A stretch of DNA of 64,000 nt from Penicillus capitatus (GCA_965649825.1 OZ287701.1:1411659-1475658); one strand, 5' to 3'. Counted from the first letter of the stretch, positions 1 through 64,000 are shown. Program-made: numbers and translations. The notes: a model not told the origin generated them from the sequence alone.

Positions 1-1
1 G

Positions 2-37250: not shown

Positions 37251-37251
37251 G

Positions 37252-37737: not shown

Positions 37738-37742
37738 AACTG

Positions 37743-38355: not shown

Positions 38356-38397
38356 TAGACAGGCTTTGGAATGCGCTTGATTCTTTTGTGGACATTA

Positions 38398-42446: not shown

Positions 42447-43503
42447 GAGATGGATTGGAGTCCAAGGACAGAGAATCGAAGGCGGAAGCTGTAAATAGTA
42501 TCGAATTAAGAGAGAAATCGTTCCTGTTGAATGGTATATCGTCTTTCTCGCTGAAGAGTGTAACAACGATGGCTTTTCATCTGCTGCAATTCAAGCGAAC
42601 ATGAGGCTGGTATCCATGGATCGCGTGTCCTGCATCGTTTTATGCCTTCTTTGCACAGCGTCTCTCTTGACCACGTCGACGGAGACAGAAAACACGCGCT
42701 TTGTTGAAAGGAGCCGACGCATCGATTCGATTGCCAGGTTCCTCCTGTCAACACCAAGAATACGGGCCATCCTCTTGATGAGACCTTGTTATGCTCAATT
42801 TAGCCACCCTCGCTTCTACTCACGGCCGAGTTTGCATTAGACACTTAAGACTTCGTCGTCATTCGCAGACGGATGTGGGCGATGACGAGGTCAGCCTCAA
42901 ATCAAACAGTCCATTGATTTCGGCAGAGGCTGCGTGTTTATGGACGGATTAATGCTGTCGAGGGCGAAAATAAGAAAGAGGAGGAGGACGTGACCATCGC
43001 CCGAAGGCGCTTGATGAGGAGATGACTGCTGAGAGGATGTCCATACTCTGACAGACGCCGCTGCAGATCCCTCCAAAGCGTCCGGCGAGACACGCGCCGA
43101 TAGCCCAAGAAAGCGCACAGATGCTCGTGTGGCAACGCTCCGAAGAACATAACATCATTCCCTGCTCTTTCTTCAACACAATCTCCGACTGATCCTTCAC
43201 GCCCTCTGTGGAAAAGAGATCCTGTAAGCTCTAAGGAACACGATTCGGTGGGTGGCCATCTTGAAGCTTCACTCCATTCCTATCTTATGCCTATCTTATG
43301 CTGCGTCGTGAATAGCTTCGTCTATCCAATATGCATCTCCTTAGACTTCCTCTATCCGAAGGATTGCGTCATCGTGCGTTGAACTGCCCCTGTTGCTCCC
43401 TCAGGGCAGCGGATCTTAGAAAGCTCCCTAGAGGGTTTCCACAACTGCGTTTCAGTCTTCACGGAGCCCTTCTACTGTCTGGATCTCATTGTGACGACCA
43501 TGA

Positions 43504-43931
43504 ATGGCGGTGTCCATCTCTTCGAAACAAGGGGATCTTGTTACCCTCTCCGGACATGAGACAACAGAAGTGATGCGCATCCTCGACCTTCTTGGCCTTA
43601 TTAGACACGCACGCGCCACTTGTACGTTAAGATCCAAGAAACGGAGCCTTTTGTCGCCGGAGACAGACATGTTGGCGTTTTGCATCGAAGGACAGTCGAC
43701 CTGACAGGAATACTCGAGGCGACAAAGTTACCGTCCGCTTTTCCGTTGTTGACAATCGAAAAGTGCCGGAAGGAAAAGGACCGGGCCCATACAATGCGAT
43801 CGATCCGTCGTCCTCTATCCGGCCATTCGTCAGTTTGTTTGTCTCGTCCAGAACGTGACGTCAATGAGATGAACGTTGGAGCTTTTCTTGTCATTGGCGT
43901 GGTCGACACATACTCGCAACCGGGAACATAA
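43504..43931 (+). CDS. Small hypothetical protein (probably two exons)
   Basis: ORFs 43504-43704 and 43620-43931 can be joined by a short GT-AG intron. No family recognised. Confidence 0.25.
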
Positions 43932-44276
43932 GAACCGCTGTCGCCGTGCCCTCGAACAAGAAAAACGGCACTCATGCTGATCGCGATGGTGGATGTTTAC
44001 AAGCTCGAGTATCGAGACGAATTCCTTCTCTCTTTACACATGCACTGGTATGGATTCGTCAAGGTACACATTCGACGAAGATCTGTATCGAAATTTGCAT
44101 GTAACTAGCTGTGAGCGTTCATCCTTAGTGGATGATTGAAGGGCCATTCACAGCTATGGTAATGGCAGCTGTGTTCATGAAACCAGATCTTATTACATGA
44201 TCGATGTTAGCTCAATCCGGAGAAAACGCAAACTGTTGACACTCTTTACAATGTAGCAAAGTTTTCACTGGTGTCT

Positions 44277-45105
44277 TCATGCTTGTGCGTGACTCTCTTC
44301 GAATTCAGCCATGTAGGTGTCTTCCAAGAAAGGATCGAAGAATGATGAACATCTTTGGTAGATTTCGGTCAAGTGCCGCTTCCCATTCTCGACGGCCTGC
44401 TCGTCTCCATGAACTCCGAAAACATCAGCGACAAATGCATCCCAGCTGAAGGACGATTCTTGCTGTGCGATGCGAACAGTGACATAGCATCTAGGCACGC
44501 ATACTGCATTGTGAAGTATTAGGTACTCGACGAACATCACCTGATGTAGTTCACGCGCCGCTTGATAGACGATCTCAGCGAGATCATCTTTCCATAGCGC
44601 AACTCACCGAGGTGACCGGACGGGTGGACAATGCCTTCTCGAATTAAAATTTCTTGGAGCTCTACACCGCATACAATGATCTGAGAGGATGCCTGACATT
44701 GGGCGTGTGCCATACGTGCTTTGCGTGCTCCAAACAAAGAAAGATATGCGTTGACAGCGGAGTCGCTAACCCAAGCATACCTAGAACAGATAGCAGAATT
44801 AAAAACCGAAGCGTTCGCAATACAGAACGGCTAGGAGATGGGAAGAACATTCTCTTACATCGTAAAACGATTCGTCGAAAGAAACGCGAACGCAAACGTT
44901 GAACACGTCGGACGACGGGCGGACAAGAAGCAACTGTCGTTTTCGAAGAAATGAACGATCGTTTTACAATGAACAGATGTGGAAGACGAAGATTGATGCA
45001 TTTAGCGAAATCCGATATTTGTCGGGTGAGGCCATCATTGACAGGAGACTCGTTTGCATTATGGTTTTCCTCTGTGACGGAATAGACGTCCGCATACTTC
45101 GGCAT
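44277..45105 (-). CDS. Hypothetical protein with an N-proximal hydrophobic helix (type II membrane-like)
   Basis: Successive minus-strand ORFs 44662-45105 (LRFLILLSVLGMLGLATPL), 44537-44737 and 44277-44540. Confidence 0.25.
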
Positions 45106-46741
45106 GCTCTAGGGGCCCAATGGAAAGAAATTAAGCAATAAAGAGAAGGAGAAACTCCTTCAACAGCCAGAGGAAGCACGTCGATGGGAAAAGGAGGGCG
45201 AATGGCGTCATCCACTTTGACCTCGTCGCTTCGCAAATGCGATTCATGCGAAGAGAATCGAGATGGGTGATGGATCGAGTCTCCCTTCTTGTGGCCGAAA
45301 TCGATGAGATGCTACGGAAGAAATGTCGAATGGACGATATTCACATTAGCTGATGCTCTTTGTGGACCATCTTGTTGTCCAACGCGTGACATCAGCAGCA
45401 TTGGAGACTCGGATTCTGTCAAATTCTTGTGTTCCAATGGCCAGGGATGCCCCCATTGGTCCTGCCGCGACAGGATCCTTCTTCCTCCCCTCGGTTCTAC
45501 ACACAAACAGTGGCCCTGTTGCAATATCGCAGCACAGCGTCTACCGACAGTACTCAGTGGTTTTCAGCACAGAGCTGCAAGCGGTTGCTGGGAGTGCCCG
45601 GCGATAAAGCAACATCAACAAAGGCTCGAAGAGTACGAGAAGGAGGTTGGTCCACCTAATCCAATCGACAGCTCAAGGGATCATGCAAGAAGAGGGGAGG
45701 AAGCACTTGAAAACGGTCCTCCAGAGAGAACGCGCCGGCGTATCTCGATCCCATTGAACTCCTCTACGCCGAGTGTTACGTCTCGGAGAGAGAACCAGAG
45801 GAGTTCCACGCCGCAGAGCGCGAAGAATTAGCCAAGTGAGGCATTTCCCGTTTCGCTGATCACTCGCCCTGCTTCCGGCTAAAAGATCGAAAGGGAGAGG
45901 TTCATAGAGTTGCGCTCGCAAAGAGAGATCGAACGGCCGAAACAAGATGGGCAATCAAAGGTGCCTCCCGAGATCCCTCGATTGACTCTTCTCGTCACAG
46001 AGGTCACAAGAACAACAAATCGCCCATCAAAGCCAGATTGCTAGCACGTGATCCCTCGGCGTTGCTGATCGCATTTCTGCGTTGCTATTGCCTGCCCAGG
46101 CCTGGACTCGGACAATGCCATCGAGCCATGCTATTCGCGAGGAACGTGTTTACGAATTCGGAGACCTGGATTTCGATGCTCGGGACTGCCTGGCATTGCA
46201 CGCTGGAAGGCGCTCTTGCTTCGACAAGATCTCGTCTGCGATGCAGTCGCCTGCCGATCTGCCTGTTCGCTTCATCCCAAGAACACCTCTCTCGCACTTC
46301 ACTGACCTCGGGCAAGCAGATCCCTTCGACGTAGAAGCGTTTGTCTTGCCTGGAGATCGTTCCAGAGCACTCGTGTGCATTGATGCCACGATAGAGATGA
46401 TTGACGCCTCCGCACCGTTCGTTCTCATACCGATCGACCCATTTTGCTCGCGATCACATCTCAGGGCCTATCAAATCTGGTTGTCTCTGACAGATCTGCA
46501 TTTGGTTTCTTTCTGCGCAGCGAATGCAGCGGCTGTGACACGGGCGACAGAAGAAACAGCCTGAATCCCTCTCAAGCCTCCAGAAACACTCGAAAGGCTG
46601 AAGGAACAAGACAAGCTAAACACACACACGTTGCCCGGTTGTTGTCCTGTTTGTAAACATAACGTTTATTACAGAAAGGAACCATCGTCTACTTTCGATC
46701 AGCAAACAGGTCATGCTACACTCAGGCAATCGACAGGTCTT

Positions 46742-48060
46742 CTACATAGGAAACCCGCTGGGTCCAAAATTCTGTCCATCTGGTGTTCTGGGAACGTGGT
46801 AGCTCTGTGCACTCGCAGATGCGGATTGCACCCTCGCAGGCTCCCGAACAGATAGCGGCTCCGTCCCATACTCATCAATCTCTTGCAGCAAACTCTGCAG
46901 GACACAGCCTTTATTATAGATCACCAATTTCCTCTCCCTTCTCACTTCGGTTTCTGCAATGTGGTCGACTGGTTCATGCTGCAGAATCAAAAGCTTAATG
47001 CGCTTGTCTCCTCGCCAGTTATCGATACTGGCCTTCACAGTGAAGATCATTGTTTTGTAGAGCGCACAGTTGACAATGTCTTCGGCCTGTTTCGCATCTT
47101 CCGCCTCCTTTTCTCTCAATTCATCAACCGGGATGCCGATGAGGCCTTCGGCGCAGAAAGAAGCTGTTGCAAAATGCGCATCCGTAAAGTCACTCAGTTT
47201 CATTTCCATGGCATATCGCCATTCTGCATCCACATCCTTATCACATTCCTAACACACCCACCCCCTTCGGATCGCTCCGAGACTTTCATCAAACAAGGTT
47301 GTTTGTCTGAAGAGGACAGCTGGGGTAGTAGATTTTCTTGCGGATGTAGCTGATCGTCGCGAGAACCTGCAAACAAGATGTCAAGTTGTTGCAGGGGCAT
47401 TGTGTCGCCAACCTTGAAGACGGGCCGCTTTGTCAATTCCACGGTGTTCACGTTGATGTCTGACAGATAACTGAGCTGTGCATCACGTACCGGACCGCTC
47501 TGGGACAATGCTGTGCCAGGTACGCGTGTTGTACCTCCCTCATGAAACCTAGCCGCACAGAGTTCACATTTGAATCATTCTTCATTGCACACAGACCAGG
47601 ATAAGAGCTCCGTGGCTTCTTCAATATCCGGATCGATCTCCATCGGCGTGAACTACACGCCAAATCTCTCACACTCTAACAGTTAAATGAGTGAGACTAT
47701 CATACCTCCGGATCGAAGGCGTAAGGTATGTCCGTGCCAGCTGCCCCGTCCGGCACAAGAACAACTGTCGAGTTTCTTCTCAATACTATTTCGATGTCGG
47801 TATTGAAGTCTTTGAAGCGCTGAACATTATGGATATTATAAGTGAGTGAGAGAAGTGCAAGATATTAACATACCTCATCGCGTATCACGTTGACATCAGC
47901 TTTTGAGATTTTGTAGATTTTGCCCACCCTTATCATCTCATAGAACGCCACCGCTGCTTCATTGAACGCAGCACATCGAATGAACTGACAGCTTTCCTCG
48001 CCAACCGATTCCTCGCAGTGCTTGTAGACGATCCTGGCCAGCTGCCAGACAGTCAGTTTG
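46742..48060 (-). pseudogene. RPA1: Replication protein A 70-kDa subunit-like, degenerate; DBD-A and DBD-C present, DBD-B nearly absent
   Basis: Contains IRCAAFNEAAVAFYEMIRVGKIYKISK (DBD-A), IDPDIEEATELLSW, VLATISYIRKKIYYPSCP and WRYAMEMKLSDFT...FTVKA...RIKL (DBD-C). There is an in-frame TAG in the zinc ribbon at 47249-47251, plus frameshifts. Confidence 0.78.
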
Positions 48061-48313
48061 ACTCTGTCCTCAGCGCTGTGTTGGAATGCTCTGTGCCGTC
48101 GTCGGGTGCATATTGAAGACATTTTCATGTGCTGCTTAGAGATTCGAAGCTTTCTTGGCAAGCAAAGAGAAAGAAGCAACTTCAGACGTTCTGTCACAGT
48201 CTTGGACGCTGTGTCTAATCTGATGACGCAAAAATACTCTCAGACGAATTCCAAGGACTGTCGTTAATGGCAGTTTCTGCCTCCACATAAAGGACTCTCG
48301 GAAAAGGAAAAAA

Positions 48314-49717
48314 GTGTTCGATCGCATTGGCTGTCCTTCTGATGCGATGAGCACACTGCAATTGCTTGACAGCGTCGATGTCGCTCTGCTCGGTGTCTGC
48401 ACGCAGAACCCAGTTCTTGTCGAAGGAAAACCAGCGGTGGGAGAGACAGCTCTGGTCGGTGGACTGAGGAAGTCTCGCGGGTGCTTGCTGCAAAAAGGTT
48501 ATCATTCTGAGCAAACAGCGACACCGCCACACTGCAGGACTACTCTGGGACATGGCTGCATGAGAAGGCAGGATTCCGTTACTCAAAGGGTGTCTGTCCT
48601 CGTCCAAACGATCGATGACGGAGACTGCTTTGTGGCATAGGAGTTCAATCTTGCACCTCTTTCTGTCGCGGCAGCGTTAAAGACTTTCCTGGAGGGATCA
48701 CTTGCTGTTCAGATTCCAGGCACAGGTGCGACGGTCAATGCACATCCCGATTTCAGATTCTCTGCAACCCAGAATCTATTCCACGGAGGGGGAGATAATG
48801 ATGATGTCGACGACTTTCAACAGGACGAATCTGCTGACATAGTCTACAAGCGATTCCAAAGGAAGAGTATGGAGGTGTTGTGACCGCCACCATGGAAGAC
48901 GCAGAGAACCTGTCCACTCTCTACCTTGCATCCTCCGAGATGTTCCGTCTGACGATGAGAGACTTGATCAAGCTGGTTCACAGATACAACTCCTTCAAGT
49001 AGAGAATAGAAATGGAAGGTCCTGGTCTGCTGTTTTCGTGCCGTTGCTTGATCCCCTGATCCCAACCGAAGACGAGTAAGTTCAGGAGATTCAGCAGGTG
49101 CAGCCCTTTTCACTCATCGAGTTGGCATTTGCAGAATGGGAAGAGACTATTGCAAGATCCTGCACGGACTAACATATGGAAGAGAAGAGAAACGAATTTC
49201 TGTTCTTCCAAGGACCTCTATGTGTTTCGTTCAGCGGATACAGATTCGATCGAAGCCGACTGTGGAAACGTGATAATGCCGCGAAGCTGCCGCCCGAGAT
49301 CTTTCCGGACAAGCTTGTTGAATTCGCATTCGCAGTAGGGGCAAAAGAAACAGTCTTCCTGTATGGAGAGTCTTCCTTCAAGACAGAACTCATCAGAACG
49401 TGGCTAGAGATCTCTCAGATGGAGGGCAAAGCGCAGATGATACACTTGAACTCGGAGTCCAAACAACAGAAATGATCGGCCAAATGCATCTAGTGTGGAT
49501 GGTGGAGGTTCTTGAAATGATGTTATCCATCGGCAACTTCATTCTCAGAGAGATCGAAGGACTTGCCGTGAATAACATGCCAAGGAAACGCGAATACAGC
49601 ATTCGACGGTTGGACTGCTCAGATGATCTTCCAAGAAGAGGCTATGCAACTCACTCATCGCACCCTTTGGAGGAAAATCAGAGATGGCGCGCGACCGGGA
49701 ATCTTTTGCAACAATGA
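48314..49717 (+). pseudogene. Midasin/dynein-related (AAA_5) ATPase fragments, inactivated
   Basis: Walker A region PVLVEGKPAVGETAL (K to E); Walker B region DCFVA*EFNLA with a stop at 48638-48640; HPDFRFSATQN; TMRDLIKL; and a second degenerate module VFLYGESSFKTELIR...IHLNSES...MIGQ. Confidence 0.6.
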
Positions 49718-50916
49718 AAGAGACGCAATCTGCACCTTTTGAAGGTGAAGCCAGCATTCGTCATTCGTCCAATACAGAGGGTACGGAATCATATGACGAT
49801 TCGAGTAGCGACACAGTCCGGGGAACATCTGAGGGTGCAGAAGAAGGCGCTGATTGGAAAGAAGACAAATCAACAGCTGCACCTGACTCTTCCGAACAGT
49901 ATCCGGGTGCGAAAACAGACTTTGGGATCCGTGTAGCGAGTGAGCTGATCGAAGAGCCCGAGTACAGCACGTTTGAATTTGTCCGCGAAACGGTAAGAGG
50001 GTGATCGATTTGTTGAGCATAGTGATATGCTTAGGAATTGCTTTCGCGTGGGCGGAGTTCTTTGTCGACAAATAGTGAGCACTTTTCAAAACAGATGTCT
50101 GTTTGTTTTCAAAACCCCCTTTTATAATCTAACATGACGTTATGATTGCCGTCATGTTGTCGTCATGCTAATTGTCATGTTGTCGCTTCCTTGGTCGTTC
50201 GTTCTTCGGCCTGACAATATTCTTCTGTGTTACTTTCGCTTCTCGGGTTTTGTCCACCAGACAGCCTATACGATGCAAGATGTTATCTTGCTCCGCCAGT
50301 CTTGCCTTGAGTTCTTCGTTCTCCGCCCGTTCTTTCTTGAGAGCATCTCGCAGTCGAGAGATCTCCTGCATGAGTCTTGTCGTCTCCTTGGCACCTATGT
50401 CCATGTGTCAACGAAGCTTTCTGAAACAAAGAGAGGGGCACTTGCCTGCCGAACCAGAGTGGGTAGTGTTTACGTTGGTCACACTTACCGGCTTCCCTGC
50501 GGCGCAGTTTCCAGTTTCCATGTTCCCGACGACCGCGGCCACATCATCTGCCAGAACAACACAACACCGTTCAACCTCTGGGTTACGCCTATCAAATCCG
50601 AGCGCTTCAAGGCTCCGAACTCGCGCAACCTGCCACCATTCCACCATGCTGGGCCCCCAGCACCACGCCGGTGACCTTGGCGGTGTCACATGTCCGAGCT
50701 CGGACGTGCCACCGCGAGTTCCCGTTGGGGCCTGAACGGCCCCACGCGATACACCGCCCCAAGTCGGGGAGCCCATGGGCTGCAAACCTGTACGTGGATG
50801 GACATGGAACACTTCTAGGAACATCCCCGATGCAAAGGGAGAGTCGCTTGGCAGAGCTGCTGTACCTCCCGGAGCGCTAACGAGCTCGAGCATTCCACTG
50901 CACACCATCGGTCGGC

Positions 50917-51345
50917 CGGCGGAGGGGACAAGGGTCCCCCTTTGCTTCGCTTCCTCGCATCATCCGTCGGTCGCCGAGGGAACAAGGGTCCCCCCTTTGC
51001 TTCTCTTCCTCGCACCATCCGTCGGTCGCCGGAGGGAACAAGGGTCCCCCCTTTGCTTCGCAACCGTAGCAAATGTGTCAGCGCCGGAGGGAACAAGGGT
51101 CCCCCCTTTGCTCGCAACCGTAGCAAATGTGTCAGCGCAACCGTAGCAAATGTGTCAGCGCCGGAGGGAACAAGGGTCCCCCCTTTGCTTCGCAACCGTA
51201 GCAAATGTGTCAGCGCAACCGTAGCAAATGTGTCAGCGCCGGAGGGAACAAGGGTCCCCCCTTTGCTTCTCTTCCTCGCACCATCCGTCGGTCGCCGGAG
51301 GGAACAAGGGTCCCCCCTTTGCTTCTCTTCCTCGCATTATCCGTC
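50917..51345. repeat. Composite minisatellite at the array edge built from about 23-32-bp blocks (cgcaaccgtagcaaatgtgtcag; cgccggagggaacaagggtcccccctttgctt; ctcttcctcgcaccatccgtcggt)
   Basis: Direct repetition visible in the sequence. A shorter version recurs in every 1184-bp unit. Confidence 0.9.
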
Positions 51346-54300
51346 AGTCAGCGACATTTAAATTGTTACGACCCGCAGCCGCCGACGACTTTGGCGCCCG
51401 TTTTCAGTGGACAGCTGTCCGCCTTCGTGCAGCTGTCCAAAGAATTGCATAAATTCTTACAATTACTGTTCGAACAGTCTTCGTAATCCCTACGCATTCG
51501 TCGTTAACCCGTTGCCCGTCGACAAACACGACACCGTCCACCTACACTCGCGACGACTTCGCCGAGACATTCGTCCCCGTCCACCTAACCTACATCTATA
51601 CCCTCCGTGGAGCAAGCGGCGTGCTTCTACGAACCCATCATCGCGACTGTTGACGGGCAGCACGCGTCGAGGATCGCGTGCTCTCGAACGTCCGGATGCG
51701 ATCAGCTTCGGACCCGATCGGTCGACCGGAAGCGTCCATCGTCCACTCCGCGCGACCAGCAGTTGGTGTGCCGTCCTCTGCGACCATCCCGAAAACGACA
51801 GGCCGGTCACTGTAATCCGTCTCTCGGCTCCAAAACAGGGGGTAAAGCGACTGTGACAGGTGCCTCGGCCTCAGAAACACGGGGCAAGTCCGCCGTGACC
51901 CGGCCCTCGGCCTCAAAATCGGCAAGTGGGCTCGTGCAACCCGGCTCTCGACTCCCGAACAGGGGACGAGCTTCGGCGAATGAGAACGCGACTGCGAACT
52001 GGGGCTAACACGTAATGCCAGCATCGGAGCGCACCGTCCAGCTTTCTGCGACGTCTGTCCCGCGCGTGGAGCGACTGGTGGCTGCAATGGACTCGACTTC
52101 GATCATATCGACAAGCGAACAAGTTCCGAGGACCGCGTGCTCTCGGACATGGCGAACGGATTCAACTTCGGACCTCATCCGTCACTCGCCGCGACCAATT
52201 GGACGCATGCGCGAGCAAAGATGCTGGCGAAGTTTCTCGAACGAGCATCGGACATCGACCAGTCGATTTGGTGCAACGCGTTAGACCGGTCGCGTGCGGC
52301 GAGGCGACGAAGCCGTATGTACAACGCGGCGCAAATGTGTCAGCGCCGGAGGGAACAAGAGTCCCCCCTTTGCTCGCAACCGTAGCAAATGTGTCAGCGC
52401 AACCGTAGCAAATGTGTCAGCGCCGGAGGGAACAAGGGTCCCCCCTTTGCTTCTCTTCCTCGCACCATCCGTCGGTCGCCGGAGGGAACAAGGGTCCCCC
52501 CTTTGCTTCTCTTCCTCGCATTATCCGTCAGTCAGCGACATTTAAATTGTTACGACCCGCAGCCGCCGACGAATTTGGCGCCCGTTTTCAGTGGACAGCT
52601 GTCCGCCTTCGTGCAGCTGTCCAAAGAATTGCATAAATTCTTACAATTACTGTTCGAACAGTCTTCGTAATCCCTACGCATTCGTCGTTAACCCGTTGCC
52701 CGTCGACAAACACGACACCGTCCACCTACACTCGCGACGACTTCGCCGAGACATTCGTCCCCGTCCACCTAACCTACATCTATACCCTCCGTGGAGCAAG
52801 CGGCGTGCTTCTACGAACCCATCATCGCGACTGTTGACGGGCAGCACGCGTCGAGGATCGCGTGCTCTCGAACGTCCGGATGCGATCAGCTTCGGACCCG
52901 ATCGGTCGACCGGAAGCGTCCATCGTCCACTCCGCGCGACCAGCAGTTGGTGTGCCGTCCTCTGCGACCATCCCGAAAACGACAGGCCGGTCACTGTAAT
53001 CCGTCTCTCGGCTCCAAAACAGGGGGTAAAGCGACTGTGACAGGTGCCTCGGCCTCAGAAACACGGGGCAAGTCCGCCGTGACCCGGCCCTCGGCCTCAA
53101 AATCGGCAAGTGGGCTCGTGCAACCCGGCTCTCGACTCCCGAACAGGGGACGAGCTTCGGCGAATGAGAACGCGACTGCGAACTGGGGCTAACACGTAAT
53201 GCCAGCATCGGAGCGCACCGTCCAGCTTTCTGCGACGTCTGTCCCGCGCGTGGAGCGACTGGTGGCTGCAATGGACTCGACTTCGATCATATCGACAAGC
53301 GAACAAGTTCCGAGGACCGCGTGCTCTCGGACATGGCGAACGGATTCAACTTCGGACCTCATCCGTCACTCGCCGCGACCAATTGGACGCATGCGCGAGC
53401 AAAGATGCTGGCGAAGTTTCTCGAACGAGCATCGGACATCGACCAGTCGATTTGGTGCAACGCGTTAGACCGGTCGCGTGCGGCGAGGCGACGAAGCCGT
53501 ATGTACAACGCGGCGCAAATGTGTCAGCGCCGGAGGGAACAAGGGTCCCCCCTTTGCTTCGCAACCGTAGCAAATGTGTCAGCGCAACCGTAGCAAATGT
53601 GTCAGCGCCGGAGGGAACAAGGGTCCCCCCTTTGCTTCTCTTCCTCGCACCATCCGTCGGTCGCCGGAGGGAACAAGGGTCCCCCCTTTGCTTCTCTTCC
53701 TCGCATTATCCGTCAGTCAGCGACATTTAAATTGTTACGACCCGCAGCCGCCGACGAATTTGGCGCCCGTTTTCAGTGGACAGCTGTCCGCCTTCGTGCA
53801 GCTGTCCAAAGAATTGCATAAATTCTTACAATTACTGTTCGAACAGTCTTCGTAATCCCTACGCATTCGTCGTTAACCCGTTGCCCGTCGACAAACACGA
53901 CACCGTCCACCTACACTCGCGACGACTTCGCCGAGACATTCGTCCCCGTCCACCTAACCTACATCTATACCCTCCGTGGAGCAAGCGGCGTGCTTCTACG
54001 AACCCATCATCGCGACTGTTGACGGGCAGCACGCGTCGAGGATCGCGTGCTCTCGAACGTCCGGATGCGATCAGCTTCGGACCCGATCGGTCGACCGGAA
54101 GCGTCCATCGTCCACTCCGCGCGACCAGCAGTTGGTGTGCCGTCCTCTGCGACCATCCCGAAAACGACAGGCCGGTCACTGTAATCCGTCTCTCGGCTCC
54201 AAAACAGGGGGTAAAGCGACTGTGACAGGTGCCTCGGCCTCAGAAACACGGGGCAAGTCCGCCGTGACCCGGCCCTCGGCCTCAAAATCGGCAAGTGGGC

Positions 54301-57300
54301 TCGTGCAACCCGGCTCTCGACTCCCGAACAGGGGACGAGCTTCGGCGAATGAGAACGCGACTGCGAACTGGGGCTAACACGTAATGCCAGCATCGGAGCG
54401 CACCGTCCAGCTTTCTGCGACGTCTGTCCCGCGCGTGGAGCGACTGGTGGCTGCAATGGACTCGACTTCGATCATATCGACAAGCGAACAAGTTCCGAGG
54501 ACCGCGTGCTCTCGGACATGGCGAACGGATTCAACTTCGGACCTCATCCGTCACTCGCCGCGACCAATTGGACGCATGCGCGAGCAAAGATGCTGGCGAA
54601 GTTTCTCGAACGAGCATCGGACATCGACCAGTCGATTTGGTGCAACGCGTTAGACCGGTCGCGTGCGGCGAGGCGACGAAGCCGTATGTACAACGCGGCG
54701 CAAATGTGTCAGCGCCGGAGGGAACAAGAGTCCCCCCTTTGCTCGCAACCGTAGCAAATGTGTCAGCGCAACCGTAGCAAATGTGTCAGCGCCGGAGGGA
54801 ACAAGGGTCCCCCCTTTGCTTCTCTTCCTCGCACCATCCGTCGGTCGCCGGAGGGAACAAGGGTCCCCCCTTTGCTTCTCTTCCTCGCATTATCCGTCAG
54901 TCAGCGACATTTAAATTGTTACGACCCGCAGCCGCCGACGAATTTGGCGCCCGTTTTCAGTGGACAGCTGTCCGCCTTCGTGCAGCTGTCCAAAGAATTG
55001 CATAAATTCTTACAATTACTGTTCGAACAGTCTTCGTAATCCCTACGCATTCGTCGTTAACCCGTTGCCCGTCGACAAACACGACACCGTCCACCTACAC
55101 TCGCGACGACTTCGCCGAGACATTCGTCCCCGTCCACCTAACCTACATCTATACCCTCCGTGGAGCAAGCGGCGTGCTTCTACGAACCCATCATCGCGAC
55201 TGTTGACGGGCAGCACGCGTCGAGGATCGCGTGCTCTCGAACGTCCGGATGCGATCAGCTTCGGACCCGATCGGTCGACCGGAAGCGTCCATCGTCCACT
55301 CCGCGCGACCAGCAGTTGGTGTGCCGTCCTCTGCGACCATCCCGAAAACGACAGGCCGGTCACTGTAATCCGTCTCTCGGCTCCAAAACAGGGGGTAAAG
55401 CGACTGTGACAGGTGCCTCGGCCTCAGAAACACGGGGCAAGTCCGCCGTGACCCGGCCCTCGGCCTCAAAATCGGCAAGTGGGCTCGTGCAACCCGGCTC
55501 TCGACTCCCGAACAGGGGACGAGCTTCGGCGAATGAGAACGCGACTGCGAACTGGGGCTAACACGTAATGCCAGCATCGGAGCGCACCGTCCAGCTTTCT
55601 GCGACGTCTGTCCCGCGCGTGGAGCGACTGGTGGCTGCAATGGACTCGACTTCGATCATATCGACAAGCGAACAAGTTCCGAGGACCGCGTGCTCTCGGA
55701 CATGGCGAACGGATTCAACTTCGGACCTCATCCGTCACTCGCCGCGACCAATTGGACGCATGCGCGAGCAAAGATGCTGGCGAAGTTTCTCGAACGAGCA
55801 TCGGACATCGACCAGTCGATTTGGTGCAACGCGTTAGACCGGTCGCGTGCGGCGAGGCGACGAAGCCGTATGTACAACGCGGCGCAAATGTGTCAGCGCC
55901 GGAGGGAACAAGGGTCCCCCCTTTGCTTCGCAACCGTAGCAAATGTGTCAGCGCAACCGTAGCAAATGTGTCAGCGCCGGAGGGAACAAGGGTCCCCCCT
56001 TTGCTTCTCTTCCTCGCACCATCCGTCGGTCGCCGGAGGGAACAAGGGTCCCCCCTTTGCTTCTCTTCCTCGCATTATCCGTCAGTCAGCGACATTTAAA
56101 TTGTTACGACCCGCAGCCGCCGACGACTTTGGCGCCCGTTTTCAGTGGACAGCTGTCCGCCTTCGTGCAGCTGTCCAAAGAATTGCATAAATTCTTACAA
56201 TTACTGTTCGAACAGTCTTCGTAATCCCTACGCATTCGTCGTTAACCCGTTGCCCGTCGACAAACACGACACCGTCCACCTACACTCGCGACGACTTCGC
56301 CGAGACATTCGTCCCCGTCCACCTAACCTACATCTATACCCTCCGTGGAGCAAGCGGCGTGCTTCTACGAACCCATCATCGCGACTGTTGACGGGCAGCA
56401 CGCGTCGAGGATCGCGTGCTCTCGAACGTCCGGATGCGATCAGCTTCGGACCCGATCGGTCGACCGGAAGCGTCCATCGTCCACTCCGCGCGACCAGCAG
56501 TTGGTGTGCCGTCCTCTGCGACCATCCCGAAAACGACAGGCCGGTCACTGTAATCCGTCTCTCGGCTCCAAAACAGGGGGTAAAGCGACTGTGACAGGTG
56601 CCTCGGCCTCAGAAACACGGGGCAAGTCCGCCGTGACCCGGCCCTCGGCCTCAAAATCGGCAAGTGGGCTCGTGCAACCCGGCTCTCGACTCCCGAACAG
56701 GGGACGAGCTTCGGCGAATGAGAACGCGACTGCGAACTGGGGCTAACACGTAATGCCAGCATCGGAGCGCACCGTCCAGCTTTCTGCGACGTCTGTCCCG
56801 CGCGTGGAGCGACTGGTGGCTGCAATGGACTCGACTTCGATCATATCGACAAGCGAACAAGTTCCGAGGACCGCGTGCTCTCGGACATGGCGAACGGATT
56901 CAACTTCGGACCTCATCCGTCACTCGCCGCGACCAATTGGACGCATGCGCGAGCAAAGATGCTGGCGAAGTTTCTCGAACGAGCATCGGACATCGACCAG
57001 TCGATTTGGTGCAACGCGTTAGACCGGTCGCGTGCGGCGAGGCGACGAAGCCGTATGTACAACGCGGCGCAAATGTGTCAGCGCCGGAGGGAACAAGAGT
57101 CCCCCCTTTGCTCGCAACCGTAGCAAATGTGTCAGCGCAACCGTAGCAAATGTGTCAGCGCCGGAGGGAACAAGGGTCCCCCCTTTGCTTCTCTTCCTCG
57201 CACCATCCGTCGGTCGCCGGAGGGAACAAGGGTCCCCCCTTTGCTTCTCTTCCTCGCATTATCCGTCAGTCAGCGACATTTAAATTGTTACGACCCGCAG

Positions 57301-57956
57301 CCGCCGACGACTTTGGCGCCCGTTTTCAGTGGACAGCTGTCCGCCTTCGTGCAGCTGTCCAAAGAATTGCATAAATTCTTACAATTACTGTTCGAACAGT
57401 CTTCGTAATCCCTACGCATTCGTCGTTAACCCGTTGCCCGTCGACAAACACGACACCGTCCACCTACACTCGCGACGACTTCGCCGAGACATTCGTCCCC
57501 GTCCACCTAACCTACATCTATACCCTCCGTGGAGCAAGCGGCGTGCTTCTACGAACCCATCATCGCGACTGTTGACGGGCAGCACGCGTCGAGGATCGCG
57601 TGCTCTCGAACGTCCGGATGCGATCAGCTTCGGACCCGATCGGTCGACCGGAAGCGTCCATCGTCCACTCCGCGCGACCAGCAGTTGGTGTGCCGTCCTC
57701 TGCGACCATCCCGAAAACGACAGGCCGGTCACTGTAATCCGTCTCTCGGCTCCAAAACAGGGGGTAAAGCGACTGTGACAGGTGCCTCGGCCTCAGAAAC
57801 ACGGGGCAAGTCCGCCGTGACCCGGCCCTCGGCCTCAAAATCGGCAAGTGGGCTCGTGCAACCCGGCTCTCGACTCCCGAACAGGGGACGAGCTTCGGCG
57901 AATGAGAACGCGACTGCGAACTGGGGCTAACACGTAATGCCAGCATCGGAGCGCAC
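50917..57956. repeat. Tandem satellite I: about 6 near-identical units of 1184/1185 bp
   Basis: Identical ORF sets recur at 51205, 52389, 53574, 54758, 55943 and 57127 (offsets 1184, 1185, 1184, 1185, 1184). Confidence 0.97.
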
Positions 57957-60900
57957 CGGCTTGCTTTCTGCAACGTCCGTCCCCCGCGTGGAGCAACTGG
58001 TGTACTGCAATTGACTCGACTTCGGTCATTTCGACAGGTGAACCAGTTTCGCGGACCGCGTGCTCTTGAACATACGAACGCGTTCAGCTTCGAGCCCGAA
58101 CGATCGGCTGTCATAATTTATCGCGCACTGTGCGAGTCGAGCAACTGGTGTACTGCTTTTTGCGGCTGTCCCGAAATCGCCAAGTCGGTCACTGTAACCC
58201 GTCACTCGCCCTCAAAACAGGGGGTAACGCTAGTGTAACCCGAGCCTCGGCCTCAAAAACGCCACATAGGCCAGTGCAACCCGGCCTTCGGCCTCAAAAA
58301 CGCCACATAGGCTAGTGTAACCCGGCCCTCGGCCTCAAAAACGCCACATAGGCTAGTGTAACCCGGCCCTCGGCCTCAAAAACGCCACATAGGCTAGTGT
58401 AACCCGGCCTTCGGCCTCAAAATCGCCACATAGGCTAGTGTAACCCGGCCTTCGGCCTCAAAATCGCCACATAGGCTAGTGTAACCCGGCCTTCGGCCTC
58501 AAAATCGCCACATAGGCTAGTGTAACCCGGCCTTCGGCCTCAAAAACGCCACATAGGCTACTGTAACCCGGCCCTCGGCCTCAAAAACGCCACATAGGCT
58601 ACTGTAACCCGGCCCTCGGCCTCAAAAACGCCACATAGGCTAGTGTAACCCGAGCCTCGGCCTCAAAATCGCAACATAGGCTAGTGTAACCCGGACCACG
58701 GCCTCAAAACAGGGGGTAAGGCTTTCGTGACCGAGAACGTTTCTCTGAACTCGGACAATTACGTAATTTCAGCTTCGGAGCGCACCGGCTTGCTTTCTGC
58801 AACGTCCGTCCCCCGCGTGGAGCAACTGGTGTACTGCTTTTGACTCGACTTCGGTCATTTCGACAGGCGAACCAGTTCCGCGGACCGCGTGCTCTCGAAC
58901 ATCCGAAAGCGTTCAACTTCGGACCCGAACGTTCTGCCGTCGGCATTCATCGTGCACTCCGCTAGTCGAGCAACTGGTGTACTGCTTTTTGCGGCTGTCC
59001 CGAAATCGGCAAGTCGGTCACTGTAACCCGTCACTCGCCCTCAAAACAGGGGGTAACGCTAGTGTAACCCGAGCCTCGGCCTCAAAAACGCCACATAGGC
59101 CAGTGCAACCCGGCCTTCGGCCTCAAAAACGCCACATAGGCTAGTGTAACCCGGCCCTCGGCCTCAAAAACGCCACATAGGCTAGTGTAACCCGGCCCTC
59201 GGCCTCAAAAACGCCACATAGGCTAGTGTAACCCGGCCCTCGGCCTCAAAAACGCCACATAGGCTAGTGTAACCCGGCCCTCGGCCTCAAAATCGCCACA
59301 TAGGCTAGTGTAACCCGGCCCTCGGCCTCAAAACAGGGGGTAAGGCTTTCGTGACCGAGAACGTTTCTCTGAACTCGGACAATTACGTAATTTCAGCTTC
59401 GGAGCGCACCGGCTTGCTTTCTGCAACGTCCGTCCCCCGCGTGGAGCAACTGGTGTACTGCTTTTGACTCGACTTCGGTCATTTCGACAGGTGAACCAAA
59501 TTCCGCGGACCGCGTGCTCTCGAACATCCGAAAGCGTTCAGCTTCGGACCCGAACGTTCTGCTGTCAGCATTCATCGTGCACTCCGCGAGTCGAGCAACT
59601 GGTGTACTGCTTTTGACTCGACTTCGGTCATTTCGACAGGTGAACCAAATTCCGCGGACCGCGTGCTCTCGAACATCCGAAAGCGTTCAACTTCGGACCC
59701 GAACGATCTGCCGTCAGCATTTATCGTGCACTCCGCTAGTCGAGCAACTGGTGTACTGCTTTTGACTCGACTTCGGTCATTTCGACAGGTGAACGAGTTT
59801 CGCGGACCGCGTGCTCTTTAACATCCGAACGCGATCAACTTCGAGCCCGAACGATCGGCTGTCATAATTTATCGCGCACTGTGCGAGTCGAGCAACTGGT
59901 GTACTGCTTTTTGCGGCTGTCCCGAAATCGGCAAGTCGGTCACTGTAACCCGTCACTCGTCCTCAAAACAGGGGGTAAGGTTACTGTAACCGGGCCCTCG
60001 GCCTCAAAAACGCCACATAGGCTAGTGTAACCCGGCCCTCGGCCTCAAAATCGCAACATAGGCTAGTGTAACCCGGACCACGGCCTCAAAACAGGGGGTA
60101 AGGCTTCCGTGACCGAGAACGTTTCATGTGAACTCGGACAATTACGTAATTTCAGCTTCGGAGCGCACCGGCTTGCTTTCTGCAACGTCCGTCCCCCGCG
60201 TGGAGCAACTGGTGTACTGCTTTTGACTCGACTTCGGTCATTTCGACAGGTGAACCAGTTCCGCGGACCGCGTGCTCTCGAACATCCGAAAGCGTTCAAC
60301 TTCGGACCCGAACGATCTGCCGTCAGCATTCATCGTGCACTCCGCGAGTCGAGCAACTGGTGTACTGCAATTGACTCGATTTCGGTAATTTCGACAGGTG
60401 AACGAGTTTCGCGGACTGCGTGCTCTTTAACATCCGAACGCGATCAACTTCGAGCCCGAACGATCGGCTGTCATAATTTATCGCGCACTGTGCGAGTCGA
60501 GCAACTGGTGTACTGCTTTTTGCGGCTGTCCCGAAATCGCCAAGTCGGTCACTGTAACCCGTCACTCGCCCTCAAAACAGGGGGTAACGCTAGTGTAACC
60601 CGAGCCTCGGCCTCAAAATCGCCACATAGGCTAGTGTAACCCGGCCTTCGGCCTCAAAAACGCCACATAGGCTACTGTAACCCGGCCCTCGGCGTCAAAA
60701 ACGCCACATAGGCTACTGTAACCCGGCCCTCGGCCTCAAAAACGCCACATAGGCTAGTGTAACCCGGCCCTCGGCCTCAAAAACGCCACATAGGCTAGTG
60801 TAACCCGGCCCTCGGCCTCAAAAACGCCACATAGGCTAGTGTAACCCGGCCCTCGGCCTCAAAAACGCCACATAGGCTAGTGTAACCCGGCCCTCGGCCT

Positions 60901-63900
60901 CAAAATCGCCACATAGGCTAGTGTAACCCGGCCCTCGGCCTCAAAACAGGGGGTAAGGCTTTCGTGACCGAGAACGTTTCTCTGAACTCGGACAATTACG
61001 TAATTTCAGCTTCGGAGCGCACCGGCTTGCTTTCTGCAACGTCCGTCCCCCGCGTGGAGCAACTGGTGTACTGCTTTTGACTCGACTTCGGTCATTTCGA
61101 CAGGTGAACCAAATTCCGCGGACCGCGTGCTCTCGAACATCCGAAAGCGTTCAGCTTCGGACCCGAACGTTCTGCTGTCAGCATTCATCGTGCACTCCGC
61201 GAGTCGAGCAACTGGTGTACTGCTTTTGACTCGACTTCGGTCATTTCGACAGGTGAACCAAATTCCGCGGACCGCGTGCTCTCGAACATCCGAAAGCGTT
61301 CAACTTCGGACCCGAACGATCTGCCGTCAGCATTTATCGTGCACTCCGCTAGTCGAGCAACTGGTGTACTGCTTTTGACTCGACTTCGGTCATTTCGACA
61401 GGTGAACGAGTTTCGCGGACCGCGTGCTCTTTAACATCCGAACGCGATCAACTTCGAGCCCGAACGATCGGCTGTCATAATTTATCGCGCACTGTGCGAG
61501 TCGAGCAACTGGTGTACTGCTTTTTGCGGCTGTCCCGAAATCGGCAAGTCGGTCACTGTAACCCGTCACTCGTCCTCAAAACAGGGGGTAAGGTTACTGT
61601 AACCGGGCCCTCGGCCTCAAAAACGCCACATAGGCTAGTGTAACCCGGCCCTCGGCCTCAAAATCGCAACATAGGCTAGTGTAACCCGGACCACGGCCTC
61701 AAAACAGGGGGTAAGGCTTCCGTGACCGAGAACGTTTCATGTGAACTCGGACAATTACGTAATTTCAGCTTCGGAGCGCACCGGCTTGCTTTCTGCAACG
61801 TCCGTCCCCCGCGTGGAGCAACTGGTGTACTGCTTTTGACTCGACTTCGGTCATTTCGACAGGTGAACCAGTTCCGCGGACCGCGTGCTCTCGAACATCC
61901 GAAAGCGTTCAACTTCGGACCCGAACGATCTGCCGTCAGCATTCATCGTGCACTCCGCGAGTCGAGCAACTGGTGTACTGCAATTGACTCGATTTCGGTA
62001 ATTTCGACAGGTGAACGAGTTTCGCGGACTGCGTGCTCTTTAACATCCGAACGCGATCAACTTCGAGCCCGAACGATCGGCTGTCATAATTTATCGCGCA
62101 CTGTGCGAGTCGAGCAACTGGTGTACTGCTTTTTGCGGCTGTCCCGAAATCGCCAAGTCGGTCACTGTAACCCGTCACTCGCCCTCAAAACAGGGGGTAA
62201 CGCTAGTGTAACCCGAGCCTCGGCCTCAAAAACGCCACATAGGCCAGTGCAACCCGGCCTTCGGCCTCAAAAACGCCACATAGGCTAGTGTAACCCGGCC
62301 CTCGGCCTCAAAAACGCCACATAGGCTAGTGTAACCCGGCCCTCGGCCTCAAAAACGCCACATAGGCTAGTGTAACCCGGCCTTCGGCCTCAAAATCGCC
62401 ACATAGGCTAGTGTAACCCGGCCTTCGGCCTCAAAATCGCCACATAGGCTAGTGTAACCCGGCCTTCGGCCTCAAAATCGCCACATAGGCTAGTGTAACC
62501 CGGCCTTCGGCCTCAAAAACGCCACATAGGCTACTGTAACCCGGCCCTCGGCCTCAAAAACGCCACATAGGCTACTGTAACCCGGCCCTCGGCCTCAAAA
62601 ACGCCACATAGGCTAGTGTAACCCGAGCCTCGGCCTCAAAATCGCAACATAGGCTAGTGTAACCCGGACCACGGCCTCAAAACAGGGGGTAAGGCTTTCG
62701 TGACCGAGAACGTTTCTCTGAACTCGGACATTTACGTAATTTCAGCTTCGGAGCGCACCGGCTTGCTTTCTGCAACGTCCGTCCCCCGCGTGGAGCAACT
62801 GGTGTACTGCTTTTGACTCGACTTCGGTCATTTCGACAGGCGAACCAGTTCCGCGGACCGCGTGCTCTCGAACATCCGAAAGCGTTCAACTTCGGACCCG
62901 AACGTTCTGCCGTCGGCATTCATCGTGCACTCCGCTAGTCGAGCAACTGGTGTACTGCTTTTTGCGGCTGTCCCGAAATCGGCAAGTCGGTCACTGTAAC
63001 CCGTCACTCGCCCTCAAAACAGGGGGTAAGCCTACTCTAACCCGAACCTCGGCCTCAAAATCGCCACATAGGCTAGTGTAACCCGGCCTTCGGCCTCAAA
63101 ATCGCCACATAGGCTAGTGTAACCAGGCCTTCGGCCTCAAAAACGCCACATAGGCTACTGTAACCCGGCCTTCGGCCTCAAAAACGCCACATAGGCTACT
63201 GTAACCCGGCCCTCGGCCTCAAAAACGCCACATAGGCTAGTGTAACCCGGCCTTCGGCCTCAAAATCGCCACATAGGCTAGTGTAACCCGGCCTTCGGCC
63301 TCAAAATCGCCACATAGGCTAGTGTAACCCGGCCCTCGGCCTCAAAATCGCCACATAGGCTAGTGTAACCCGAGCCTCGGCCTCAAAATCGCCACATAGG
63401 CTTGTGTAACCCGAGCCTCGGCCTCAAAATCGCAACATAGGCTAGTGTAACCGGGCCCTCGGCCTCAAAAACGGCAAGTAGGCTAGTGTAACCCGGCCCT
63501 CGGCCTCAAAACAGGGGGTAAGGCTTCCGTGACCGAGAACGTTTCATGTGAACTCGGACAATTACGTAATTTCAGCTTCGGAGCGCACCGGCTTGCTTTC
63601 TACAACGTCCGTCCCCCGCGTGGAGCAATTGGTGTACTGCTTTTGACTCGACTTCGGTCATTTCGACAGGCGAACCAGTTCCGCGGACCGCGTGCTCTCG
63701 AACATCCGAAAGCGTTCAACTTCGGACCCGAACGTTCTGCCGTCAGCATTCATCGCGCAATCCGCGAGTCGAGCAACTGGTGTACTGCTTTTTGCGGCTG
63801 TCCCGAAATCGGCAAGTCGGTCACTGTAACCCGTCACTCGCCCTCAAAACAGGGGGTAACGCTACTGTAACCCGGCCTTCGGCCTCAAAATCGCCACATA

Positions 63901-64000
63901 GGCTAGTGTAACCCGGCCTTCGGCCTCAAAAACGCCACATAGGCTACTGTAACCCGGCCCTCGGCCTCAAAATCGCCACATAGGCTAGTGTAACCCGGCC
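57957..64000. repeat. Modular satellite II of 149-bp and 41-bp subrepeats with 1613-bp and 3973-bp higher-order periodicities; runs off the window
   Basis: The 41-bp unit is ggctagtgtaacccggccctcggcctcaaaaacgccacata. The 149-bp unit is anchored at gagcaactgg (59444, 59593, 59742). ORF repeats occur at 59393/61006, 60063/61676 and 58704/62677. Confidence 0.97.

Follow-up and report, generated by a model that had tools for sequence, protein, structure and literature searches.

A nested satellite at a contig end of a probable algal genome, possibly a subtelomere-type array

The right-hand part of the window, the 64,000-nucleotide stretch of DNA analysed here, consists of tandem repeats, including a unit of about 149 bp, whose cassette lengths obey a simple arithmetic rule. 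A sequence-only reading proposed that these repeats are a candidate centromere. We asked what kind of array this is, and to which chromosomal domain it belongs. The repeat family starts at about position 50,890, upstream of the interval covered by that reading, and the array is correspondingly larger than had been noted. It falls into two zones.

50,891 to 57,956, no strand assigned: zone A, delimited by TRF, anchor matches, autocorrelation, unit identity and module homology
57,957 to 64,000, no strand assigned: zone B, the interval of the sequence-only reading, defined by module parse and sequence

Zone B is organized around the anchor AAAACAGGGGGTAAGGCT, which gave seven exact matches (58706, 59330, 60088, 60943, 61701, 62679 and 63508) and a further 14 matches with one or two mismatches; shuffled sequences give an expectation of zero. 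TRF detected 41-bp and 148/149-bp subrepeats in the array. A module-by-module parse resolved each zone B cassette into an 18-nt anchor, a leader of 96 or 97 nt, n monomers of 149 or 148 nt, a 52-nt link, m copies of the 41-mer, and a terminal 23 nt, and yields all six complete cassette lengths.

57,754 to 58,705: transitional cassette
58,706 to 59,329: cassette with n = 1, m = 7, by module parse
59,330 to 60,087: cassette with n = 3, m = 3, by module parse
60,088 to 60,942: cassette with n = 2, m = 9, by module parse
60,943 to 61,700: cassette with n = 3, m = 3, by module parse
61,701 to 62,678: cassette with n = 2, m = 12, by module parse
62,679 to 63,507: cassette with n = 1, m = 12, by module parse
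63,508 onward: last zone B cassette, cut off by the contig end

Exact matches, TRF and the parse thus place the seven anchors, the six cassette lengths and both subrepeats where the sequence-only reading had put them. Its exact length formula, 188 + 149n + 41m, holds with caveats. All six lengths fit. Chance is not the explanation: when five lengths are drawn at random, some constant fits in only 0.2% of the sets. The constant itself is arbitrary, with 23 constants fitting equally well, and the real modules are of 148/149 and 96/97 nt: the final 149-type monomer in each cassette is 148 nt, and the cassettes at 60,088 and 61,701 have two 148-nt monomers and a 97-nt leader, satisfying the formula because the indels compensate (a +1/−1 pair cancels). 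The apparent grammar arises because cassettes are built from whole subrepeat copies. The values of n and m are uncorrelated across the zone B cassettes, the junctions between modules are conserved, and multi-cassette blocks are duplicated, which bears out the earlier idea of two independently expanding subrepeats within one cassette.

Zone A begins with a truncated unit in which a block of 55/56-bp and 23/78-bp subrepeats (50,903 to 51,349) is expanded; six units of 1184/1185 bp follow, which are 99.75 to 100% identical. An anchor variant, AAAACAGGGGGTAAAGCG, occurs in this zone at 51832, 53016, 54201, 55385, 56570 and 57754. The units alternate, producing a 2369-bp dimer period (autocorrelation 0.959 at 2369 bp) of which zone A holds about three copies, with 7 mismatches in 4442 bp. 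Homologues of the zone B anchor, 41-mer, leader, 149-mer and link are all found in the zone A units, at 72 to 82% identity. Larger duplications are superimposed on the cassettes, and the array then runs into the end of the contig.

57,991 to 59,060, no strand assigned: duplicated segment, copy at +3973 (61,964 to 63,033), 11 mismatches in 1070 bp
59,330 to 60,620, no strand assigned: segment copied en bloc at +1613 (60,943 to 62,233) with 1 mismatch in 1291 bp; no more than two copies visible
63,955 to 64,000, no strand assigned: where the assembled sequence gives out; ERZ25074695 ctg340143_8x_l, the public record of 283,198 bp, breaks off within a run of 41-mers at window position 63,955

The en-bloc duplicates are 99.0 to 99.9% identical. 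The 3973-bp recurrence is as first described, and the 1613-bp duplication, previously called a higher-order repeat, is real. The higher-order copies (about three of the 2369-bp dimer, two of the 1613-bp block) are as similar as those of higher-order repeats, at copy numbers too low to separate such repeats from recent segmental duplication.

The contig is a linear, 283-kb ENA metagenome contig of 8x coverage; a literature search for the two ENA accessions involved found no papers. Its public record differs from the window at two bases within the array and ends 45 bp earlier. Low coverage, a position at the contig end and these small discrepancies could point to an assembly artefact, with copy numbers and block duplications created by mis-assembly. 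However, diverged variants of the repeat family are numerous and internally consistent (zone A versus zone B; 148 versus 149 types), and both versions of the sequence give the same module counts over 12.2 kb; we regard an artefact as highly improbable. About 13 kb of array was assembled, which may correspond to roughly one long-read length. Given the integer variation in copy number with kept junctions, the near-identical zone A units and the en-bloc duplicates, it is near certain that unequal exchange has shaped this array, a non-coding satellite nested at several levels.

A protein-coding repeat was rejected: array ORFs reach at most 188 aa, differ among cassettes, lack Pfam matches, and have no relatives beyond their own contig. 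When a spurious array ORF was used to query a collection of 5.8 billion proteins, related ORFs were found on that contig only, in an 8x assembly with few ORFs called in the array. No array copies were found in JGI metagenomes (pattern scan) or GTDB genomes. The many CTTCGG hairpin motifs suggested that the repeats might be genes for small structured RNAs (snoRNA, SL RNA or a novel ncRNA). Several GNRA/UUCG-like hairpins do lie in the 149-mer and leader, and double changes are seen at 5 of the 37 pairs predicted, but there is no Rfam family match, neither strand folds more stably than its shuffles (z = +0.30 and +0.36), and the covariation term over 10 diverged monomers is unfavourable (+0.19), leaving RNA genes a barely credible explanation.

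We also considered an association with ribosomal DNA. The array would then comprise subrepeats of intergenic spacer (IGS) type, with leader and anchor as a duplicated spacer promoter and the 41-mers as enhancer-like elements, or a satellite flanking a terminal rDNA cluster, and the contig would break where high-copy rDNA starts. The array is GC-rich and highly homogenized. The IGS of Xenopus and of plants share a subrepeat layout of this kind. Several subrepeats of variable copy number combined with a reiterated unique leader make up the classic IGS arrangement (PMC6589552, PMC1215480), and the cassette has this arrangement, with a putative promoter role for leader and anchor. Satellite DNA also borders terminal rDNA arrays on the centromeric side in Chlamydomonas and its relatives (PMC8287924). 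However, no Rfam family was found in the window at the gathering threshold, and none in the array even at E ≤ 5, rRNA and 5S included; the sister loci described below likewise gave no Rfam or rRNA match, and no tRNAs were found. A high-copy unit with such a spacer should moreover have been assembled and gene-called, yet no other contig has related ORFs, a point of little weight. We consider a link to rDNA unlikely.

A scan of the whole window for eight standard telomere motifs found none in three consecutive copies. The 'TAACCC' and 'CCTCAAAA' portions of the 41-mer were rejected as a telomere motif, being too short and in the wrong orientation for a right-hand end. The centromere reading had proposed looking downstream for telomere repeats or rDNA; the window has neither telomere motif nor rRNA, and its end is also the end of the contig, the public record ending at window position 63,955.

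The identity of the host and the gene content beside the array were examined using the following features.

1,413 to 2,762, minus strand: phosphatidylserine decarboxylase (PSD) gene, used to find the contig and a sister organism
36,000 to 50,890, no strand assigned: proximal flank of the array, with no ORF longer than 205 aa and no array-module copy
46,742 to 47,233, minus strand: isolated RPA C-terminal-like ORF in the proximal flank, 3.7 kb from the array

The named relatives of the PSD gene are bacterial; among named eukaryotic proteins, its best relatives are two from Caulerpa lentillifera, at 54 to 55%. Evidence for a eukaryotic host within the window comes from an RPA C-terminal exon and from Arm/HEAT fragments. 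The sister genome contains intron-broken gene calls, L37ae, S4, DUF1995, and LTR and LINE reverse transcriptases. A bacterial origin, to which the PSD relatives might point, was rejected on the strength of intron-fragmented ORFs, the RPA domain, and the L37ae and retrotransposons of the syntenic sister genome. The array belongs to the nuclear genome of an uncultured eukaryote, probably an alga, and the Caulerpa relatives together with DUF1995 in the sister genome suggest a green alga.

The flank of the array is gene-poor. A satellite or minisatellite of interstitial position and no positional role, derived for example from the internal or terminal repeats of a transposon such as a Helitron-type element, could by its length alone have interrupted an 8x assembly. 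The array appeared as a single locus in all searches, and a lone RPA-C-like ORF lies nearby. The 41-mer has a short GC hairpin with CTAG 17 nt further on, which may loosely resemble a Helitron 3′ end. However, no transposase, Rep or helicase domain was found in the flank, and the remaining 50.9 kb of the window has no dispersed copies of any array module. An interstitial satellite is possible, if doubtful. Neither a full RPA1 gene nor a Helitron adjoins the array: there is a single RPA-C-like ORF only, with no Rep or helicase domain near it.

The sister organism provided a comparison. It shares about 80% DNA identity with the window over 17 kb of synteny; the proximal part of the window has its true orthologue there on a 28-kb contig. 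Its satellite is a 329-bp unit, GC-rich (0.62 versus 0.47 to 0.52) as is the window array, and relatives of its ORFs turn up on contigs of ten distinct lengths. Both ends of a 4.08-Mb contig carry this satellite, as do ends of contigs of 1.37 Mb, 0.81 Mb and 52 kb; polarity toward the contig end is identical in all five terminal arrays, one of which may be a haplotig of another. An internal head-to-head pair of 329-bp arrays resembles two abutted chromosome ends. Contig ends in the sister genome showed no telomere repeat. Present at both contig ends and fixed in polarity, the 329-bp satellites behave like subtelomeric arrays, in keeping with published subtelomeres of green algae. One of the terminal arrays on the 4.08-Mb contig has a PSD paralogue 5.3 kb away; the window shows no synteny with the flank of that contig, only the PSD gene matching. 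No homology between the window array and the 329-bp satellite was detected by blastn (word size 7) or nhmmer, and the analogy with the sister genome is therefore positional only.

Can the array, or its continuation, still be the CENH3-binding domain of the chromosome? The tandem array with its higher-order structure, 148/149-bp monomer and strong homogenization, the assembly break within it and the gene-poor flank would all suit a centromere. The 148/149-bp monomers, however, occur in runs of one to three per cassette, never more, interleaved with the 96-nt leader, the 52-nt link and 3 to 12 copies of the 41-mer; the bulk of the array is made up of 41-mers and 1184-bp units, and there is no long homogeneous head-to-tail run of a roughly nucleosome-sized monomer. 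The array is GC-rich rather than AT-rich (0.578 versus 0.497 in the flanks) and enriched in CpG relative to the flanks, and it lies at a contig end. No second contig enters it from the far side or bears it on another chromosome, a weak argument at 8x. Terminal satellites with inverted polarity at both ends of a contig, as in the sister genome, are impossible for a centromere array, and in the green algae that PMC8287924 discusses the putative centromeres are Zepp-like retrotransposon arrays, which we also count against this reading. The candidate centromere found no positive support, and we judge it decidedly unlikely. Very unlikely, too, is a broader proposal, in which the composite cassette of two interleaved subrepeats would be a functional centromere or chromosome-specific chromatin-organizing domain, or an array of Pol I-type spacer promoters/enhancers no longer attached to rRNA genes. 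Were the centromere version true, an uncultured algal lineage would carry its centromere identity in a composite cassette rather than a uniform monomer.

The array is more likely to be a chromosome-end array of subtelomere type than a centromere. From its position and from the sister genome, we tentatively propose that it may occupy a domain close to the chromosome end. Like known subtelomeric repeats, it is species-specific, homogeneous and duplicated en bloc. Against this placement, no telomere repeat occurs in the window or at the contig ends of the sister genome, the array shares no sequence with the 329-bp satellite, and no second contig has related ORFs, though a genome-wide subtelomeric repeat should recur (in an 8x assembly with few ORFs called). 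The location of the proximal part's orthologue on the 28-kb contig and the possible haplotig among the five terminal arrays also weigh against it. The sequence-only reading had named two outcomes that would tell against a centromere, a subtelomeric repeat or confinement to one small locus; the evidence leans toward them and proves neither.

The anatomy suggests that unequal exchange, conversion and replication slippage would make the array grow and shrink on three scales, from the 41-bp and 148/149-bp subrepeats inside cassettes, through entire cassettes and 1184-bp units, to multi-cassette blocks. As a terminal array it would be specific to the lineage and possibly to the chromosome. It would yield no sequence-specific product, and any role would go no further than that of a repeat or heterochromatin buffer separating the last genes from the chromosome end. 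If the placement is right, this is one more lineage-specific complex subtelomeric array, from a eukaryote in a long-read metagenome, and sister species would have swapped their terminal satellites completely (a 329-bp unit versus 41/149/1184-bp cassettes) next to unique DNA that is still about 80% identical. It could illustrate satellite turnover and help to mark chromosome ends in metagenome-assembled eukaryotic genomes. It also carries a caution, that a neat length grammar and a unit of about 149 bp are not evidence for a centromere. We conclude that the array is an ordinary satellite of known type, and that it opens no new question.

Among known systems, centromeric higher-order satellites (human alpha satellite, Arabidopsis CEN178, rice CentO) share with the array multi-unit periodicities (here 2369 and 1613 bp), near-identical higher-order copies and a subrepeat near nucleosome-core length, but the window monomers form no long homogeneous runs, two to three higher-order copies are visible, and the array is not AT-rich. 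The rDNA IGS of Xenopus (60/81-bp repeats and Bam islands), plants and Drosophila resembles it in having a reiterated unique segment with two subrepeats of independently variable copy number, GC richness and concerted evolution; unlike an IGS, the array has no rRNA gene within 64 kb and no high-copy contig bearing its modules.

Subtelomeric arrays of green algae include Sultan, Subtile and Suber of Chlamydomonas reinhardtii, Subrin of C. incerta, Subrecs of C. schloesseri and Subrel of Coccomyxa (PMC8287924). Sultan is GC-poorer than its genome, whereas the window array is GC-richer than its flanks. The window array also differs from these subtelomeres in showing no telomere, shared 'spacer' or second chromosome end, and its unit has no convincing telomere-like motif. 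Green-algal subtelomeric arrays are species-specific and unrelated in sister species, exceed 99.5% identity within an array, and can be duplicated en bloc several copies at a time (PMC8287924); the window array shares the lineage-specific tandem organization, the high internal identity and the en-bloc duplication. They often terminate contigs without telomeres (PMC8287924), as here. A few green-algal chromosome ends have chromosome-specific complex arrays, Subtile forms arrays of 1 to 12 copies with other DNA between them, and Suber units reach 2.45 kb (PMC8287924). The class C ends, like the window, have complex arrays in which short repeat runs (1 to 12 copies) are split by reiterated non-repeat DNA, and they also have kilobase-sized units with indel subtypes (PMC8287924).

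In the cassette region at the right end of the window (zone B, 57957-64000), the 18-nt anchor was found as an exact match at all seven positions named by the sequence-only reading (58706, 59330, 60088, 60943, 61701, 62679, and 63508). A further 14 matches carry one or two mismatches, where none is expected in shuffled sequence. Tandem Repeats Finder called both the 41-bp and the 148/149-bp arrays in this interval, and they are visible in the sequence as well. A module-by-module parse gave an order common to every cassette, the anchor-to-anchor unit of zone B.

Modules of a zone B cassette, in order
Anchor, 18 nt
Leader, 96 or 97 nt
n monomers, 149 or 148 nt each
Link, 52 nt, its start resembling the monomer
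m 41-mers, with an "anchor-type" variant in first and in last place
Opening 23 nt of the following anchor unit

Over the six cassettes, n takes the values 1, 3, 2, 3, 2, and 1 and m the values 7, 3, 9, 3, 12, and 12; these copy numbers give back the reported cassette lengths of 624, 758, 855, 758, 978, and 829 bp and support the proposal that two subrepeats expand independently. The "exact" grammar of 188 + 149n + 41m bp stands for the lengths but not for the parts. The final monomer is 148 nt in each cassette, and two cassettes meet the formula only because a 97-nt leader (+1) cancels a shortfall (-1) in the monomers, both of which are 148 nt. The constant 188 is arbitrary, since 23 different constants fit. 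Among sets of five lengths taken at random, a constant could be fitted to only 0.2%, and the observed fit is not due to chance; it follows from cassettes being made of whole subrepeats. The supposed 1613-bp higher-order repeat does recur, but as one en-bloc duplication (59330-60620 and 60943-62233, 1 mismatch in 1,291 bp), and the 3973-bp recurrence is present as a second block duplication (57991-59060 and 61964-63033, 11 mismatches in 1,070 bp). Copy numbers alter independently at several levels, and homogenization is active; unequal exchange or slippage would account for this turnover.

Repeats do occupy the interval first assigned to the array, but the same family already begins at about 50,890, upstream of zone B, and the array is correspondingly larger.

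Array components upstream of zone B
Opening block, with subrepeats of 55/56 bp and 23/78 bp
Zone A, six units of 1184/1185 bp, 99.75 to 100% identical, alternating as a 2369-bp dimer

Each zone A unit contains 72 to 82% homologues of the 41-mers, the leader, two 149-mers, the link, and the anchor, together with a unique insert of ∼560 bp. The array modules have no copy in the remainder of the 64-kb window. GC content is 0.578 in the array versus 0.497 in the flank, the CpG observed/expected ratio is 1.29 versus 0.96, and the GC skew of the array is negative; the adjoining flank is gene-poor. Proteins encoded in the window trace it to an ENA metagenome contig, ERZ25074695:ctg340143_8x_l (283,198 bp, linear, 8x), whose last base falls at window position 63,955, within the array and 45 bp before the window end. 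The array lies at an assembly end, and its assembled length of ∼13 kb is a lower bound, as the assembly stops inside it. We consider it very unlikely that the array is an assembly artifact.

A protein-coding repeat was rejected, as ORFs in the array do not exceed 188 amino acids, are unlike between cassettes, and have neither family nor relatives. Structured RNA was likewise disfavored: the folding of a cassette gained no stability over shuffled sequence (z = +0.30 and +0.36 for the two strands), and covariation support is absent across ten diverged monomers. The array contains no tRNA and no Rfam family, even at E ≤ 5, and an array of RNA genes is extremely improbable. The modules were not found in JGI metagenomes or GTDB genomes nor, within the reach of a search by spurious ORFs, on any other gene-called contig in a collection of 5.8 billion proteins. 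We conclude that the array is a nested, noncoding satellite.

Long ORFs in the window are sparse and broken; the domain matches include a putative exon for the RPA C-terminal domain along with Arm/HEAT fragments.

Features of the window outside the array
1413-2762 (-), phosphatidylserine decarboxylase (PSD) gene, intron-less, bacterial type (PSDC + PS_Dcarbxylase), 59% identical to Amorphus
3438-10852, series of same-strand orphan ORFs of 240 to 547 aa without Pfam matches, for which the ENA record calls genes of 601, 479, and 317 aa
21501-23960 (+), 819-aa ORF with a 39-bp (13-aa) coding tandem repeat in 228-bp higher-order units at 21981-22622; sole domain match, a weak Lysostaphin_N
31738-33555 (+), 605-aa ORF with a right-handed beta-helix and Chlamydia-PMP-type repeats, followed by more same-strand orphan ORFs to 36.3 kb
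46742-47233 (-), isolated ORF at a distance of 3.7 kb from the array, matching the Replication factor-A C-terminal domain (E = 9e-13)

The window sequence is eukaryotic, although named PSD relatives are mostly bacterial; the only two named eukaryotic relatives are proteins of Caulerpa lentillifera (54 to 55% identity), which likewise has two copies of the gene. A green alga is a plausible host. The gene probably goes back to an old horizontal transfer and now behaves as a small family; it led us to a sister organism, a related genome in ENA sample ERZ26696514, with two copies 86% and 79% identical to that of the window. The 86% copy sits on a 28-kb contig (ctg279314) syntenic with the window, 459 bp from the contig end. 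The 7.4 kb at 3438-10852 compares with only ∼1.9 kb in the syntenic contig (L005 7476-9343) and is either an insertion peculiar to the lineage or a gene that evolves fast. Beta-helix and Chlamydia-PMP-type repeats are typical of adhesin-like surface proteins. No other RPA domain was found in ORFs neighboring 46742-47233, which may be a diverged RPA1 exon, a pseudogene, or a transposon-captured fragment.

Relative to the ENA record, the first 12.8 kb (window 1-12766) shows 35 substitutions and three small indels (∼6221, 9395, and 10295-6), the five substitutions that fall within the PSD gene leaving its protein unchanged; the array stretch (51722-63955) has two substitutions (61597 and 61934). 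Record coordinates deduced from two loci differ by 224 bp, close to the length of a single 228-bp unit in the coding repeat (21981-22622). These differences suggest another haplotype, strain, or assembly version.

The window is collinear with a sister contig over 17 kb at ∼80% DNA identity. The sister genome, assembled at 150 to 190x, contains intron-fragmented kinases, HSP90, ribosomal proteins L37ae and S4, and DUF1995, as well as NACHT/HEAT giants and LTR and LINE retrotransposons. A distance of 5.3 kb separates its 79% PSD paralogue from a 329-bp satellite that is unrelated to the window array and reaches the start of a 4.08-Mb contig; contigs of ten distinct lengths hold relatives of the ORFs in this satellite. 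Five terminal arrays were read, two of them bounding the 4.08-Mb contig and the others each at one end of the 1.37-Mb, 0.81-Mb, and 52-kb contigs. All five adjoin the contig end with identical polarity relative to it, so the pair on the 4.08-Mb contig is mutually inverted; a uniformly oriented centromeric array could not be placed in this way, whereas a subtelomeric array behaves exactly so. Retrotransposons lie just inward of the arrays, their GC content is 0.62 versus 0.47 to 0.52, and at each of these contig ends the assembly lacks a telomere repeat.

Unique flanks of the arrays on the 4.08-Mb and 52-kb contigs (L009 8522-14963 and L011 6341-12782) are 99.3% identical, although these two arrays themselves differ. 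One of the five may thus represent a haplotig, unless the flank was duplicated recently from one chromosome end to the other. Three contig ends of the sister assembly (L007, L008, and L009) share their start base within the 329-bp unit, L004 begins 5 nt later, and L011 is in another phase; the shared start base is probably assembly-graph collapse onto a common repeat, not a biological junction. Inside the 4.08-Mb contig (ctg303836, ∼2.207 to 2.213 Mb; L010 7543-13299), a reverse 329-bp array, a degenerate stretch, and a forward array follow one another. This internal pair, alongside which retrotransposons lie at ∼2.21 Mb, resembles a head-to-head joining of two chromosome ends, through an ancestral end-to-end fusion or an assembly misjoin.

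The sequence-only reading took the window array for a candidate centromere, and the results do not support this. A tandem array with a unit of ∼149 bp is all that speaks for it, whereas the monomer runs are short, the array is GC-rich and a single locus, and the terminal satellites of the sister genome behave otherwise; a centromere is quite improbable. An interstitial satellite without positional role, possibly transposon-derived, is conceivable though doubtful. We tentatively favor a subtelomere-type domain at a chromosome terminus, one that may be peculiar to this end.

Two known systems are close in architecture. One is the rDNA intergenic spacer, of which Xenopus and plants provide examples laid out in subrepeats and promoters. 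Two published accounts describe blocks of different subrepeats with reiterated promoters (PMC6589552, PMC1215480), and some green-algal chromosome ends consist of rDNA with bordering satellite DNA (PMC8287924); that the window array is of an rDNA-flanking or spacer type is unlikely. The other is the green-algal subtelomere, whose repeats are species specific and unrelated even among sister species, with copies >99.5% identical within an array and several copies duplicated en bloc (PMC8287924). A "class C" minority of ends carries chromosome-specific complex arrays, in which a ∼190-bp repeat occurs in short runs (1 to 12 copies) with reiterated other DNA between, as well as kilobase-sized units with subtypes defined by indels; the putative centromeres of these algae are clusters of Zepp-like retrotransposons, not satellites (PMC8287924). 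The published description of green-algal subtelomeres agrees point for point with our observations, and the window array, if terminal, would be a further example of an already known kind, the complex terminal satellites.
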